A stretch of 64,000 nt of DNA, taken from the NCBI GenBank assembly GCA_025603075.1, contig MU626264.1, forward strand, positions 124,001 to 188,000, given 5' to 3'. This document shows, one piece after another, positions 1,794-57,063 of the stretch. Positions within the stretch are counted from its first letter, which is position 1; the number at the start of each line of letters is the position of its first letter. Made by a program: the position numbers and the translations under genes. Below the pieces are notes generated by a model. That model was not told where the DNA came from and did no database searches. It worked only from the letters and a program-made list of their open reading frames with translations. Source of the stretch: Neoconidiobolus thromboides FSU 785. Taxonomy: Eukaryota; Fungi; Entomophthoromycota.

Positions 1794-2458
1794 GATATAG
1801 CGTTTAATGCTATAAAGAAGGGAAAATAGTTTTTTTAAAATTCTTATTTAATGGATAATTTTTTTGCTAATGACGTAACTTGAAATTACATTTTTATTCT
1901 TAAAATGCTACTATATGGATTAAATGTTTTATTTACAATAATAAACTGAATCCTCGATTAGCTGGTTTAAAAGGCGCAATAGATCAACAAATATACTCTA
2001 GTAGATTGAAAAATGCCTCTGCTTTGTTTTTATTTTTAGAAGAGATAAAAAATTAAATCAAATTCATTTTACTTTCTATCCTTTGCAATGCTGGGTATTG
2101 AGTATTAACAAAAAGGGAGCTAATGACAAATGAAGAGGAAGTTGGTTGATTAAACTGAAGAGTAAAAGCTTCTGCATAAGTTTTTAATTTTAGTAGAAAG
2201 GTAAGAGTTCTAAATTGTTAAAGAGAAGTTTTGAATCAAAATAAGTATAGATTTTTGTAAATGTAATATTATGAGTGTTGGGAAATGCTAATAAAAATAG
2301 TAAAACATTACCAAGAATAACGTTCTTTTGTATAGCCTAGAATTGGATAGCGGATAATAAAACAAAAAATTTAAAATCAAAAGTGAAACATTTAAAAAAA
2401 CCATTAATATAATTATAGGAGTAATCAAATTTTTATAACTATTATGACTATTAAACAT

Positions 2459-3232
2459 TTAAATATTTAACTTTTCACAAACCCAATCTAAATCAAATTC
2501 TTCTTTATCTTGCAACTCTAAAGCCTGTTTAAAAGACAAAATAAAACAATGTCATTAAACTAATAAAATACAAAAGCTTACGCGATTTAGCCCTGTTTCT
2601 TTCATGAAATTACTTCTGGTAGTGGAAAATAGCATATTAAGTTCATGAGAAACTAAGCATTAGGAATTGAAATTAATGTTGACGTTTGGAATGATTACTA
2701 CAAGTCAAAAATTACCTCCAGGTGGGCTGTAATGAATCAATACAAGTGGATATTTCACTCTCCCATCTTTTAACTCTTGCTAAAATAACATTTAAATTAG
2801 AAATAATATCAATGTACTTAAACTACCTTAAAGCTCAATATAATAAACGTATTAAAGAAATATAAAGTTAAGGATTGTTAGTAATAAATAAACAAAAGTA
2901 TAAATTTCAAAAAAAGGATATATTGGTGAGTCTTCTGGTAGCTCTTCTAAAAGTTCCTCAAAAGTTGTTTGTTTTTCTTCAGCTTCTAACTCAGTCTGCA
3001 TTAATTTTCGGTTTATGCTTACTATACTAACGATTAATTTATATTCCTTTGATTTATTTTTGATAGAGGTTACCTAAGATATATGAACAATCTCCTAAAT
3101 CTTTTGCAAAACGGAATTTTTTGATTTTATTTAAGATATCTTGGTCAAGCTTACAACTTATTAAACTACTCTAACATATGGGTTTGTATTAGGGGAATTT
3201 TAAGTATGCACCTTTGAGATTAATTTTACCAT
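2459..3232 (-). CDS. GMF: Glia maturation factor (ADF-H family Arp2/3 debranching factor), 7 exons, about 140 aa
   Basis: Hand splicing (ATG 3232-3230 | 3170-3074 | 3021-2922 | 2848-2827 | 2779-2716 | two further exons, stop 2461-2459) gives MSSLISCKLDQDILNKIKKFRFAKDLGDCSYILVSINRKLMQTELEAEEKQTTFEELLEELPEDSPMFIILSFKQELKDGRVKYPLVLIHYSPPGVSHELNMLFSTTRSNFMKETGLNRALELQDKEEFDLDWVCEKLNI, matching the GMF hallmarks KFRF, ELP..P.F, DGRV.YPL. Confidence 0.9.
2849..2921 (-). other. U12-type (minor spliceosome) AT-AC intron, 73 nt, intron 3 of GMF
   Basis: 5' end ATATCCTTTTT, branch site TCCTTAAC at 2874-2867, 3' end AC at 2850-2849; removal restores the frame (CCA AT|G TTT = P-M-F). Confidence 0.88.
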
Positions 3233-3820
3233 TTTATTAAAAATATCAAAAGATGGATTTAAAATTTTGTTCTTATTTTAAGTTTTAATTTGTGCCAAGT
3301 GTGTATTTTTATTGCCAATTTTCCTAAGTTTTTATTTGTAAATGAAATTTATTAATAATATTTTATTTGAAAAAATAAGCAGTAGTTTAATATACATGAA
3401 AGATAACTGATAGATATATATCGAGTCGAAGGTAAAATAGCACACGAAACTATATTAAAAAGTAGAGTTTTAGTATTAAATTTAAATAAAAAAAATATTC
3501 AACTCTTAATTATACAACTAAAATATAATAATAGTTAGAATAATTTTTAAATTTTTAATAAAATAAGAATATTAACTAAATTTAACTAAATTGTATTTAA
3601 TTTAAATATAGTTTAAAATGAACTAATAATACCATTAAATAACTAAACCGAAAATCTGGAGATATAGTTCAAAATCTAATGATGAATTACTAAATTTAGA
3701 AAATATTCAAATGTTTGAAAAAAATAGAATATAATAAATAGTTCAAACGAATGTAATCTAAAAATTTAATTAATTTATTTATATTTCTTTAATCTAATAT
3801 CATTCTCTAAAAAATCAGTC

Positions 3821-4417
3821 ATGAATTTTAAAACTTGTATAATATTACTATCCATTCACCTAACACTCTGCCAAAACCTTAGCAATGACAATAGTATGCC
3901 CCCACCACCACAAAATGATTGGCGAAGTGGCATTAACCAATTGATTCAAAATGAAAGAATGAATAATCAAGTAGCGTCAAAAAATAGTCCTGATACTAGT
4001 CAACAAGCGCCTATAGATAGTAATAATAATAACCCACAAATGTTTACCGACACCAATAACAACAATAATAACCCGCCATCACCTGCCGCAAATCCTAATA
4101 TTAATCAACAACAGCCACCTCAACCAAATAATCTAGATCCTAATCACCCTCAACCAAGTTCATCAACATCTACTGTACAAAGTATCAATCTCCAACCACA
4201 ACCAACGAATTTAAATAATACTCAAGTAGCAATACAAAATAATACAAGTTCAGCTAGCAATGGCTTTAAAACCGCTGTGATTATGGAATTGCCTAAATCT
4301 GTTTCGGTTAGAAGTGGGACATTTATTGGTTCAGATGGTGCTCTAGTTAATACTTCGTTTGTGAATTTTGTGTGTATTTTATTAGCGGTAATGACAGGTC
4401 CTTTTTTAATTAAATAA
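3821..4417 (+). CDS. Secreted Asn/Pro/Gln-rich low-complexity protein with predicted GPI-anchor signal
   Basis: Signal peptide MNFKTCIILLSIHLTLC; N/P/Q/S/T-rich body; C-terminal small-residue site followed by hydrophobic tail (SDGALVNTSFVNFVCILLAVMTGPFLIK). Confidence 0.65.
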   Translation: MNFKTCIILLSIHLTLCQNLSNDNSMPPPPQNDWRSGINQLIQNERMNNQVASKNSPDTSQQAPIDSNNNNPQMFTDTNNNNNNPPSPAANPNINQQQPPQPNNLDPNHPQPSSSTSTVQSINLQPQPTNLNNTQVAIQNNTSSASNGFKTAVIMELPKSVSVRSGTFIGSDGALVNTSFVNFVCILLAVMTGPFLIK

Positions 4418-14689: not shown

Positions 14690-15943
14690 ACTTTTTAATT
14701 TTTAATTTATTAATTATTAATTATTAATTATAGATGTAGTACCTATGGTACAAAGGGGTCTTTATCAAGGTATAATAAGTGCCACCTTTGCTTTAGCTAA
14801 TGTAGCAGGCCCGTTATTAGGTGGTTTATTAACCGATTATTTAACTTGGAGATGGGTATTTTATATTAATATACCTATTGTAATAATAGCTGGAATAGTC
14901 ATTATATTTTCATTACCTAAATTAAAGTTAAATAACTCAAAATTTAAAGATACGATTCCACGTATTGATTTTTTAGGTACAATATTGTTAGTCGTTGGAA
15001 TTATATTACTTACTCTTGGGTTAAATTGGGGTGGTACAACTTACAGTTGGTCTTCAATTCAAGTTCTATTATGTTTAATTATTAGTCTTGTATTATTGAC
15101 TGCTTTTATATTTGTTGAGAAATATTATGCTAAAGAACCAGTCATTCCAGGAAGATTATTTACGAGAAATTCATTATTAGCCAGTATCAATGCCTTTATG
15201 TATTGTATACCTTTTTTTTCAACTACTTATTATTGGCCATTGTATCACCAACGAGTTCAATTGAAATCCGCATTTGATGCTGGTTTACATGCTTTTCCTC
15301 CTTTATTAGCAGTATGTTTATGTTCGGTAGCTTCGGGTTTACTTGCTCAACAATTTCGTACCTATCGACCTATCATGCGCTCTGGTTCAGTTATTCTTTT
15401 AATTGGTATTTCTTTAATGGCTCTATTAAGAAAGGATATTACTCAAGCTGAACTCTTTGTTTTTCCTGTTTTAATTGGAGCAGGTATTGGTTTTAATATT
15501 CAATTAACTTTAACTTGTGCTCAGTTAGCAGTGAATGCTTCGGACGCTGCTATGATCACTTCTTTTATCGCATCTGCACAAACTCTTGGAGGTGTTTTTG
15601 GTTTAGCTATTGTCGGTTCCATTTATAATAACGTTTTATTTAATTCTTTAAAACATAATCTCCCTGAGGAAAATGTAAATTTAATATTTCAATTTCATTC
15701 TATATAGTTATTAATTTTTTTTAGATTACTCAACTTTTGAGTCAACTTAATAATTTGGATACTTTATCTTCTACAATTCAAAAACAAGTAACTGTTTCTT
15801 ATCTTGATGCCTTTCGTACCCTTTTCCTTTCTATGATTCCTTTTTGCGTGATTAGTTTAATATGTACCTTAGCTTGTGAAGATATTCCACTCCAAAATCA
15901 TACAGAAGCTGAAAAAGTAGCTGAGAATTCTAATGAATCATAA
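14147..15943 (+). CDS. MFS drug:H+ antiporter (DHA2, 14-TMS type), 3 exons
   Basis: LASIDETIVATA, WIAASYLL, GKFSDLFGRK, GPLLGGLLTDYLTWRWVFYINIP motifs; two GT-AG introns join the three track ORFs. Confidence 0.9.
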
Positions 15944-29535: not shown

Positions 29536-30571
29536 ATATAGATTATTTTATAATACAAAAATCTTGTATTGATAAATGCTACAATTTGTATTTATATTTA
29601 AAGTTTTAGAATATATAAAGTTTCTGAAAAACATCTAAACTATTCCTTCTGCCATTTTTAAAACGCTACTTTTTTCTCAAACAAAATCCACTTTAGCATA
29701 TATGGTTAAATAAAAGATATTTGTTTATGATATAGCATTTTACCTTATTCTTTATGATTTCCGTAGAATAATATTTTAAAAAATAAAGGATATTATGTAG
29801 ATAACATGTTACTTTTCTACCATTCTTAATTTTATTAATCAAGCCTTTCATGTTTTTACCATCCAAGATTTTAAGGAAGCATACCTCAGACTTTATAACG
29901 ATAGCGGGGTTTTGGGTCATCTACTCTTTTACATAAATTTATCCTCAAATGACCAAATGACCACTACCTTTGGATGTGCTCATCTTCCTCACTTTCGAGT
30001 AGTGTTGTACAAAATGTAGTTTTCCCATATGAAGTCCAACCTAATCAAATACTAGCTTGTCAATTAAACTTAGAGTGTTTCTCCAATTAGCGCAATCATA
30101 TCTCTCCTCTCTTATCACATCCCGGTTCCTCCAGTCATATTATTGACCAGTTCGTTATAAACCTTTCTTATCTTCAACTATGAATAACTTGTGATTTTTA
30201 CTATTTTAAGGTTTTAAAGGAGCAGTCTATGACTTAAATTGAAACACTTTCATGGAATCTTCATAATTCCCTTGAAAACGACTAACCTAAAAGAAATTGT
30301 TTATCTTTGGCTTTTCCAACTCAAATTTCACTCGAATTATATAAATACAGTAATAGTAAACATCTAAGCTAATGTACTATATGTTATGTTTATCACCCTT
30401 CCACTAGTTTATCATTGTGTTTATCAGTTTTATAAAATAAATTCTAGTTTAATATATGGATCTCAGTTATTCTTAAAATATCAAAGTTATAAATAGAATA
30501 ATTAAGATATCGTATGGCTAAATATATTAGATTATAATAAAAAATAGTGTTTATATAAAATAAGAACCAAG

Positions 30572-31953: not shown

Positions 31954-32282
31954 TTCAATTTCAATTTCAATTTCAAAATAAAACTTGAATTTTAAAAACA
32001 AAACTTGAATTTTAAAAATTAAAAATGAATAATCAACAAGTTAGTTTTAAGCCAATCATTCTAGCCATAACTTTCAGCATGTATAAAACTTTAACTTGGA
32101 AAAATAAAGGAATATTATGTTTGAAATAGTATAAATAGTATAATATTAAAGTATAGACTGAATACTAAGCTCTATATTGTGAGTATATAAACTGCTAAAT
32201 ACTTAATAATATCCTAGTTTAATATAAAAAATGAATAATAACACTAATTAATCCGTGAAAATAAACAAAATTTCATCTTTAT

Positions 32283-32765
32283 TTAAAGTAGTTCTGGCAT
32301 TCTTAATACCTTCTTCTCTCTATTTTTAGCATGTTCTTTAATTAATTGGAATACTTTTAGTCCTTCGATATTTGCTGGAGGAGTTCTTTCTTCGGTTGCC
32401 CAATAATAAATATCCCAATCATTTTCATTTAATAATTGATCGAACTGCTTACAATCTTCATAAGATAAATCATTTAAATATTTTCCAACAAAGGTTGATA
32501 AGATTAAATCAGTCTCTAATATACCTCGTTTACGACATTGGTAAACTAACCTTCGTCGTAGATTCTCTTCGCTTTCTTTACTTCTATCTTGTAATGGAAT
32601 ACTAAATGGATATTCTGGTACCTCGTATAAATTACCGAATTTATCCACTCCTTTATTATTTTGTTCATTAATAAAACTGGTGTTATGTATCTTATTAATT
32701 GAGATAGCTCTCAAATTACAGATAGTTTGTTTATTCAATATTCTTTTAATAATTAAGCGACTCAT
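32283..32765 (-). CDS. SDHAF2: Succinate dehydrogenase assembly factor 2 (flavinator)
   Basis: RRRLVYQCRKRGILETDLIL, ENDWDIYYWAT; N-terminal mitochondrial targeting-like segment. Confidence 0.93.
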   Translation of the reverse strand: MSRLIIKRILNKQTICNLRAISINKIHNTSFINEQNNKGVDKFGNLYEVPEYPFSIPLQDRSKESEENLRRRLVYQCRKRGILETDLILSTFVGKYLNDLSYEDCKQFDQLLNENDWDIYYWATEERTPPANIEGLKVFQLIKEHAKNREKKVLRMPELL

Positions 32766-53985: not shown

Positions 53986-56838
53986 TTAATAACTAAAAGA
54001 AGGGGATTCTAAAAATAACACCGTTTTAGTAGGTACAATGTTACTAGAAGTTTCAAAATTTCGATTGTTACTATATGAAATAGTATCAATACTACTATAA
54101 TTGAAATTGCTAATACTATGGATGTTATTTTCATTATTACTATAAGTACTACTAGTACTATAGATGTAATTACTACTGCTACTATTACTGGGTTCATTAT
54201 TATTATAATTATTCACATTGTTCGAATTAATTTCATTATTATAACTATCTCCCACCATCATTTGGTTTTCATTTTCATTCATCACTCTTGGATATTCCAT
54301 TTGTCCATTATTTACATAATCCCTACCTCTATATCCTAAATTAGTAGGAATTGTTTTCATTACTGTCGATGTCAAAGTTCTCATTATCATTTTAGTTTCT
54401 GTAATTCTTAGATACTTTGTCTCTGTAGAAGTTTCTGTAACCTTAATCATTTTAGTGGAAGTCACTGTTGCTGTAGTAGCGGGAGTGGGGGTAATTGTAG
54501 ATTTTTCATTTTTACATTTAAGATTATAAATGTAATTTTGAAGCTGTTGATGTTGATGTTGAGAATTAAGGTAAGTTTTATCAATAATAATAGGTGCTTG
54601 GAAGGTATTAAGAAGGGGTTGAGAATTAGCAGAATTAGCTTGGTTTTTTAATAAAGATTGAATACTTGTTTGTGAGTCTTGAGTAGAGGGGATAGGAGGT
54701 TGGTTAGAAATCATTGGAGTCATGGAATTCATATTCATGTCGACGTCATTGTTCATGGAACTCATATTGTTGTTTATAGCATTCATAGCATTCATATCAC
54801 TATTCATCCCTACAATATTATCTGTATTCATATCAATTTTATTCACTTCATTATTATTAAAAGGAATATTAGAAATTGGATTTAAATTAATTGAATTTCC
54901 TTGTGGCGGTAATATTGGTTCCATTAAATCGATATTTAAGTTGTTATTATTATTATTTAATTGTTTTTTCATTATAAAATCATTTCTAGCATCTTCCGAT
55001 TCTCTATTAGGTACCATATTCATTTTAGAAGGTTGCTGCTGTGGTTGTTGTTGTAGTAATGGTCGATTACTCATTGGTTTTAAATCTTGGATTAAAATAG
55101 GTGATGGAGCAACAAAAGCTGGGTTTTTTCGATCATTTACTCCTTGTAATTTTCTCATGTTACCAATTCGTTCTCTCTCAATCATTTCTCTTTCTTTATT
55201 AATATCAATATCTTTTTCTTCTTTTTCACTAAAAGTGTCAAAATCAAAAGGATTTCTGTTAGTGTTGAGCTCTTCTCTCATAGGTTCCATATTTAAATTG
55301 ACTATATTCATATACCTTTGATTCTCTTTTAAATTATTGAATTCTTTATTATCCTTAGCTTTCTTTGGTTTATCGTTATTGATTCGATTTTCGACTTCTT
55401 TCATTTCTTCTTGCTTTGAAATACCTTGAATCTCTTCGTTTATGGCTATTTCATTCTTTTTAGTTTTATTCATTGAATTCATCATATTTATATAATTTCT
55501 CTTAAATTCCGAATTATTATCTTCTTTTCCTTCTTCATTATTATTAGTAACAGTGATCATTTCATCTCCATTCATTAAATCTTCATCTGTAATTTCTCGT
55601 ACTTCATTCATACCAGCTAATAAATTATTATTATTATTATTATTAACGTCCATCATACTGTTTGTAGTAGTAGAATTAACTTTATTTGATGGTTGATTTA
55701 ATATATTTTCTTCAGACATACCAATACGTTGTAACTTATTTTCATCGAACAAAATACTTTGGTTTGAATCTTCCATACCTTGAGATTTGTTTGGTTTACC
55801 TCCTGTAGTATTAAATTTTTTAGTCATTTCTGAATTGATATTAGTTGTCTCCTGATTTACATTTAAAGGAATATTATTATTCGTTTCTTGAGTATTACTA
55901 AGTTCATTGCTTTTCATCTCTTGTTCCGTATCTGTAATTGAAGTATTCATTGTCGTTGGTATATTATCATTGTTCATTTCCCTAGCTGGGGACGGTTCGT
56001 TAGCCTTCACCTCTTGTACTGGCTTTACGGCTGAGTTATTGTCCTCTATTGATGGTAGAATATTATTACTATTGATTCCATTTACTATCTCTGGATTAAT
56101 CTTTTTTTCTTCTTGTACAACATTTAAAGAAAGTGTATTCTTTCTTAATGGTAAATCATTGTTATTATTCATTTCCTTTGGTAAATTTAGAGTGTCATTA
56201 CTCTCCTCTTGTGCAGCATTTAATTGCATTTTATTTTTCATTTCTTCAGCGGCTTTTAGAGCTAGATCTTTCATGCTTAAACCTTGGTTGTTTTTATTCA
56301 TTTCCTGTGGCAAGGTGGAAGCGGCGTTTTTATTCTCTTGAGGTAAAGCTGTAGCTGTATTATTCATACTCAATGATATACCATTATTATCAACTTCTTG
56401 TATTTCATTTGGAGATGGAATATTCTTGTTCTCTTGCGATGGGCTATTTACTCCAGGCGGAGTGTTATTATTATTCATCTCTTGTGGTAAATTAGCTTCA
56501 TTGGACTTTACTATTGGTGCGGGACTAATAGATTCGTTATTTACTACTGGTGGAATATTATTACTATTCATTTCTTTCGGTGGGTTATTTACTATACGTG
56601 GCATACTATTGTTATTCATTTCCTGTGATAAAGTTGGTTCACTCGCTTTTACTTGTGTTGCTGCGTTTGTAGAAGGAGTATTGTTAGTGGATGGTAGGTT
56701 ATTGTTATTCATTGGTTGTAGTATATCCGAAGGGATGTTAGGCTGTCCTGATAAGGCTGGAGTAACCGACTCATTTGATGGTGGTAATGAGAGATTATTT
56801 TCTATATTTGGTATGTTTTTATTATTATTAAATGCTTC

Positions 56839-56897
<59 letters not shown>

Positions 56898-57063
56898 CAG
56901 ATGCTTCGTTATTATTATTGTTAATTGTTAAATTATTTGTATTTGAATTCTCTTGTTGAACGGTATTAGGCAATATTGGAGTGGGTTCTTTATCTATGGT
57001 TAATGCTTGACCACGGATTAAAGATACAATGAGGATGCTCAATAGTAGGTTTTTTTGTAGCAT
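53986..57063 (-). CDS. Secreted Asn/Met/Pro-rich repetitive low-complexity protein (1025 aa, intronless)
   Basis: Signal peptide MLQKNLLLSILIVSLIRG; degenerate QEMNNNxxP repeats; Thr-rich segment near the C-terminus; no recognisable domain. Confidence 0.7.
56839..56895 (-). repeat. (AAT)n coding microsatellite encoding 19 Asn
   Basis: Uninterrupted TTA/ATT run in the + strand text. Confidence 0.9.

Follow-up and report, generated by a model that had tools for sequence, protein, structure and literature searches.

The window analysed here comprises 64,000 nt of the genome of Neoconidiobolus thromboides FSU 785, a fungus that NCBI assigns to Entomophthoromycota (GCA_025603075.1, contig MU626264.1, positions 124,001–188,000 of the forward strand), and all coordinates below refer to this whole stretch. 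On its minus strand, between positions 3232 and 2459, lies a gene with homology to GMF, organized in seven exons and six introns. Splicing of the six-intron model in silico gives a stop-free coding sequence of 423 nt and a product of 140 aa. Five of the introns are of the U2-type, all with GT-AG termini and lengths of 47–63 nt; the sixth, intron 3, is 73 nt long and has AT-AC termini. For the RNA evidence, ten public sequencing runs were found to hold words of the window, and the contigs of the four best of them (X1–X4, from two studies) were aligned to positions 2300–3400.

From the 5′ end of the gene, the proposed start codon is the ATG at 3230–3232, with a GT donor directly after it. Its placement follows homology, as M together with the following SSLISCKL... 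aligns with M-SESLVVCDV of GMF beta. A proposed intron 1 of 59 nt (3171–3229, GTAAAA...TTAG, phase 0) would join this ATG to the conserved N-terminus, and it is needed between the two because an in-frame TAG stands at 3173–3171; we infer both the start codon and intron 1 on these grounds. Exon 2 (3074–3170) encodes the N-terminal GMF segment recognized through PDB matches and is followed by intron 2 (3022–3073, GT-AG, 52 nt, phase 1). Exon 3 (2922–3021), which is present in contigs of all four runs and gives a weak Cofilin_ADF match, ends in ...TCA CCA AT, so that intron 3 (2849–2921) interrupts codon 67 in phase 2. Next come a micro-exon of 22 nt (2827–2848) encoding (M)FIILSFK, and intron 4 (2780–2826, GT-AG, 47 nt, phase 0), which is absent from the contigs of all four runs. 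Exon 5 (2716–2779) again has PDB matches. Intron 5 (2653–2715, GT-AG, 63 nt, phase 1), exon 6 (2582–2652) and intron 6 (2525–2581, GT-AG, 57 nt, phase 0) precede the last exon (2459–2524), which carries a TAA stop and is supported by the open reading frame (ORF), the RNA contigs and the spliced model; exon 6 is likewise supported by RNA contigs and the spliced model.

The 5′ end of the mRNA presents a more complex picture. The spliced form of intron 1 was found in no contig of the four runs, and the contigs of X3 and X4 read through it (3171–3196/3217). One contig of X2 matches the genome up to 3169, beyond which come 23 foreign letters that leave the GMF frame open, and one contig of X3 crosses the proposed intron 1 as far as 3217 and then continues into 95 foreign letters. 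A search of the window with all 23 letters from X2 and 30 of those from X3 gave no match at up to two mismatches. These contigs may be chimeric, or their foreign letters may represent strain differences or another copy. Beyond the start codon, a common upstream region of about 660 bp separates GMF from a divergently oriented deposited gene of 173 aa (3896–4417, plus strand), which lies within a 198-aa ORF rich in N, Q and P with a hydrophobic N-terminus and has no Pfam match on record. Elsewhere in the window, two long intron-free ORFs of 1025 aa (53986–57063) and 432 aa (495–1793), both on the minus strand, correspond to deposited genes for which no Pfam family is recorded.

The assignment of the gene to GMF is based on several concordant matches. 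When the 32-aa piece encoded by exon 2 was compared with the PDB, the top five of seven matches were GMF beta or gamma chains (E 0.003–0.01), and the piece aligned to native residues ~4–33 of GMF chain 4jd2; the other two matches were weak ones to SARM1. For the 21-aa piece of exon 5, all six matches were GMF chains, with an alignment to residues 79–95 of the 142-residue GMF gamma chain 4jd2. The match positions of the two exons are thus collinear in GMF, and no cofilin or coactosin chain occurred among the matches of either, the E-values for such short pieces being modest (0.003 to about 1). No GMF match came from the PDB searches using exon 3 or the last exon. The deposited partial product carries PF00241, and a Pfam search with the single exon pieces, which are too short for it, gave one weak match to the same family. 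The 140-aa size of the spliced model fits a single ADF-H domain protein of about 140 aa. No match to the exon 2 piece was returned by HMMER among 1.84 billion representatives, and the ESM Atlas returned unnamed short clusters only. By homology, the gene belongs to the ADF-H family, and within it to the GMF branch.

On the gene strand, intron 3 opens with ATATCCTTTTTTTG at 2921 and closes with ...TTTAATAC at 2849, and the following exon opens with G TTT ATT at 2848. Its 5′ splice site, ATATCCTTT at 2921–2913, agrees with the U12 consensus /RTATCCTTT at nine of nine positions; the core of this site is the octamer ATATCCTT (2914–2921), the next base being T. The branch-site box TCCTTAAC (2867–2874) agrees with the U12 consensus at eight of eight positions, lies 18 nt before the 3′ end of the intron, and is followed by the AC terminus at 2849–2850, the earliest AC after the box. 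The U12 branch-site box, TCCTTRAY, is typically located ~10–20 nt from the 3′ end of the intron, and we take the spacing of 18 nt to be within the described range, near its long end.

Taken singly, neither motif is enriched in the 64-kb window relative to shuffles: ATATCCTT occurs three times, with about 8 copies expected for RTATCCTT, and TCCTTAAC occurs once, with 2.5 expected. We therefore also consider the ordered combination, defined as RTATCCTT followed, at no more than 400 nt, by TCCTTAAC and, 6–30 nt after that, by AC or AG. It was found once in the window and was present in 20 of 400 windows simulated under a first-order Markov model. Because of this frequency in the simulations, the sequence by itself is not decisive for a U12 intron and the decision falls to RNA; at the ~5% level, before the requirement that the frame be restored in a conserved gene is taken into account, the signals are suggestive. 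The two other copies of ATATCCTT, at 15432–15439 (a stretch spanned by a plus-strand ORF) and 29786–29793, both on the minus strand, are not followed by a branch box and were read as chance occurrences. A further candidate from a relaxed U12 scan, at 32209 on the plus strand, was rejected as not resembling an intron of a plus-strand gene, the sole sizeable ORF nearby lying on the minus strand (32283–32765). A search of the 64-kb window against Rfam gave no match.

The RNA contigs settle the position of the junction. In X1 and X2, contigs join 2848 directly to 2922, skipping exactly 73 nt, and the joint has no ambiguous letters; the ends of the skipped segment are GT..AT on the plus strand, that is, AT..AC on the strand of the gene. 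The contigs of X3 (1001 nt) and X4 (499 nt) contain exon 5, the 22-nt exon and the sequence from 2922 onward. In their alignment, six letters of the micro-exon were pushed into a look-alike intron end (2780–2785) and the other 16 were placed between the aligned blocks; together these make up the full 22 nt, so that both the micro-exon and the removal of intron 4 are real. A 60-nt contig of X1 likewise includes the micro-exon, flanked by 8 nt of exon 5 on one side and by 30 nt of sequence on the other. The neighboring GT-AG joints, namely 3021/3074, 2652/2716 and 2523/4 to 2581/2 (the cut of the last being read at +1), were present in all four runs. The AT-AC intron at 2849–2921 is confirmed to be excised precisely from the mRNA. 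An earlier note, made from the DNA sequence, had proposed a U12-type AT-AC intron at 2849–2921 and a 22-nt exon lying between it and a U2 intron, and had suggested a check of RNA across 2922/2848. Both proposals are borne out: the intron has the full set of signals, and contigs from four runs, belonging to two studies, show precisely this AT..AC joint; the contigs of X3 and X4 carry the short exon.

Some variation was observed among the runs. One contig of X2 reads A in place of the plus-strand T at 2966 (115 of 381 in word depth); the resulting change of ACA to ACT on the gene strand is synonymous and probably reflects a difference between strains or alleles. In exon 5, runs X2–X4 have one difference more than X1. 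The other six runs, X5–X10, hold 5–17% of the sampled words of the window; one of them is a fish-gut metagenome, and their labels include four other organisms and one further sample of organism B. They may derive from relatives of the fungus or from its environmental occurrences.

The deposited GMF call extends from 3001 to 2459 on the minus strand, starts at an internal Met, encodes 102 aa and does not include the conserved first 40 residues. Splicing from the deposited ATG as supported by RNA gives 100 aa rather than 102. We found ten models with GT-AG or GC-AG introns that yield 102 aa, and in all ten the coding sequence extends into the U12 intron as far as the GT at 2893. In the simplest one, GT(2893) is joined to AG(2780), the micro-exon is skipped, and MFIILSFK is replaced by ten intron-derived residues. 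Consequently, the deposited call cannot hold the true junction, and a conserved strand has probably been replaced in it by residues derived from the intron. This accords with the expectation in the earlier note that gene predictors would mis-model GMF, as seen both in the length of the call (102 aa versus 100 aa from the true splice) and in the missing N-terminus. The note also held that no alternative with GT-AG ends could restore the frame; this was incorrect, since GT(2893)-AG(2780) keeps the frame.

The existence of this in-frame alternative, with which the deposited 102-aa product is consistent, could be taken to mean that the 2848/2922 joint arose artefactually, through assembly or through template switching by reverse transcriptase, and that the real mRNA uses GT(2893)-AG(2780). 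We regard this as so improbable that it can practically be set aside. There are no letters that fit both sides of the joint and hence no repeat on which template switching could act; the joint recurs in two independent studies, whereas the 2893/2780 joint was found in no RNA contig of the four runs. The alternative would also lose the conserved strand (P)MFIILSFK, which matches ...SYK of GMF. A second explanation accepts the excision of the intron and attributes it to the major spliceosome, acting on a U2-type AT-AC intron whose U12-like motifs arose by chance in an AT-rich genome. The frequencies given above lend it something, as each motif alone is no commoner than in shuffles and the full combination appears in about 5% of simulated windows; moreover, a perfect U2-type TACTAAC stands inside the intron at 2883–2877 on the minus strand, separated from the U12 branch box downstream by two bases. 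However, the number of TACTAAC copies in the window (17, with 11.8 expected) is in keeping with chance, and both U12 signals are perfect and belong to an intron whose position matches that of a known minor intron in human. U2-type AT-AC introns have a U2-like 5′ site (ATAAGT-like) and not ATATCCTT. This second explanation is, in our view, very unlikely, if less so than an artefactual joint.

We therefore favor, with a probability of about 0.93, the reading that GMF contains a U12-type AT-AC intron at 2849–2921 on the minus strand, removed by the minor spliceosome and inherited from the ancestor shared by fungi and animals. In minor splicing, U11 binds the 5′ site and U12 the branch site, U6atac then replaces U11, and the first downstream AC is used. 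In the GMF transcript, U11 would pair with ATATCCTT at the 5′ site and U12 with TCCTTAAC at the branch site, U6atac would take the place of U11, and the 3′ site would be the first AC after the branch box. From the precise excision of the intron we infer a working minor spliceosome in N. thromboides, and removal of the GMF intron would depend on the U11, U12, U4atac and U6atac snRNPs.

In two of the runs the intron was also found in a retained form. X1 and X2 each have a further contig, which spans 2827–2951 without a gap and has a length of exactly 30 + 73 + 30 nt. It forms one arm of a bubble in the assembly, opposite the spliced contig, and its left flank consists of 8 nt of exon 5 and the micro-exon. 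Since exon 5 and the micro-exon are joined in this flank, U2 intron 4 had already been removed while the U12 intron was still held, and genomic DNA is ruled out as the source of the contig. The word depths were 891 for the retained and 763 for the spliced form in X1 (a retained share of about 54%) and 73 and 240 in X2 (about 23%), the word depths of an assembler being a poor measure of retention. The contigs of X3 and X4 show the spliced form only, and contigs drop minor variants. No contig covering U2 introns 2, 4, 5 or 6 was found in the four runs. If the U12 intron is retained, translation would read 23 codons of the intron and then meet an in-frame TAA (ORF 3001–2852). Minor introns are spliced more slowly than U2-type introns. 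The GMF U12 intron appears to be slower than its U2-type neighbors, and the retained form fits slow minor splicing.

Two stronger interpretations of the retained form can be considered, both of which we find doubtful. One is that the minor intron of GMF is a slow, rate-limiting gate kept since the fungal-animal ancestor, at which a sizeable share of the transcripts in N. thromboides waits with just this one intron still in place and hence with a premature stop; were it true, the dosage of GMF, and hence Arp2/3 debranching, would track the activity of the minor spliceosome. The other, which seems to us equally unlikely, is that the intron is mainly retained (detained) and regulatory, most GMF transcripts being non-productive. 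The near equality of retained and spliced word depths in X1 speaks for detention, as does the in-frame stop that retention adds, with the ORF 3001–2852 ending within the intron; on the other hand, the contigs of X3 and X4 are spliced only, the spliced form predominates in X2, and contig depth is unsound as a measure.

The significance of the finding can be considered at several levels. As a case verified by RNA, the GMF intron adds to the evidence for minor splicing being retained in an entomophthoralean fungus, and it indicates a minor intron position that would have been unchanged since before the split of fungi and animals. It is otherwise a clean but ordinary ancient conserved intron and leaves the knowledge of minor splicing unchanged. 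Its practical value is that it flags a deposited gene call short of 40 N-terminal residues, and the same annotation error is to be expected wherever pipelines ignore AT-AC introns.

With respect to other fungi, the survey by Larue and Roy (2023, NAR, PMC10639083) documents minor introns together with minor snRNAs in non-Dikarya fungi, including Rhizophagus irregularis (n = 205) and Basidiobolus meristosporus (n = 249), reports no convincing minor introns in Ascomycota and Basidiomycota, and discusses the retention of minor introns in Rhizophagus. Rhizophagus and Basidiobolus resemble N. thromboides in being fungi outside the Dikarya that have U12-type introns with canonical signals; neither Conidiobolus nor Neoconidiobolus is named in the text of the survey (PMC10639083). 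A full-text search of the literature for Conidiobolus or Entomophthoromycotina in connection with minor splicing, or for GCA_025603075.1, returned nothing relevant.

The closest comparison is with human GMFB, whose intron 4 is an experimentally used minor AT-AC intron; in a study of Srsf10, exons 4–5 of this gene serve as the donor cassette for a minor intron (Meinke et al. 2020, eLife, PMC7244321). The splice sites printed there are TCG/atatcc and ttctttaacttgagaaaaac/CTT; human exon 4 starts at ...cag/GGC and contains CACCAGA, and exon 5 ends at TTG/gtaagt (PMC7244321). The ATATCC 5′ site and the AC 3′ end are common to the human and fungal introns. The branch boxes of both are of the TYCTTTAAC/TCCTTAAC type, with the perfect TCCTTAAC in the fungus versus TTCTTTAAC in human, and the distance from the box to the 3′ site is 18 nt in the fungus versus 11 nt in human. 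The human protein around the junction presumably reads P-R-F-I-V-Y-S-Y-K, a sequence that we partly checked against PDB alignments. With this protein and the printed sites, human intron 4 maps after the CG of an Arg codon, in phase 2 of codon 67. It thus lies in a gene of the same family and at the same place as the fungal intron, between P-x and F, and the question raised in the earlier note, whether the P-x/F intron of GMF is U12-type in animals, is answered in the affirmative for human GMFB, where codon and phase also agree. The codon that is split encodes Met (AT/G) in the fungus and Arg (CG/C) in human, within the contexts P-M-F-I-I-L-S-F-K and P-R-F-I-V-Y-S-Y-K, respectively. The 22-nt fungal exon arises from an extra U2 intron inside what is exon 5 in human, an intron without a human counterpart as judged from the published boundaries of that exon. 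Since the two introns share gene, position, phase and AT-AC type, the fungal one would have been inherited from the opisthokont ancestor and not gained; as judged from this sequence comparison, GMF intron 3 is an inherited opisthokont minor intron.
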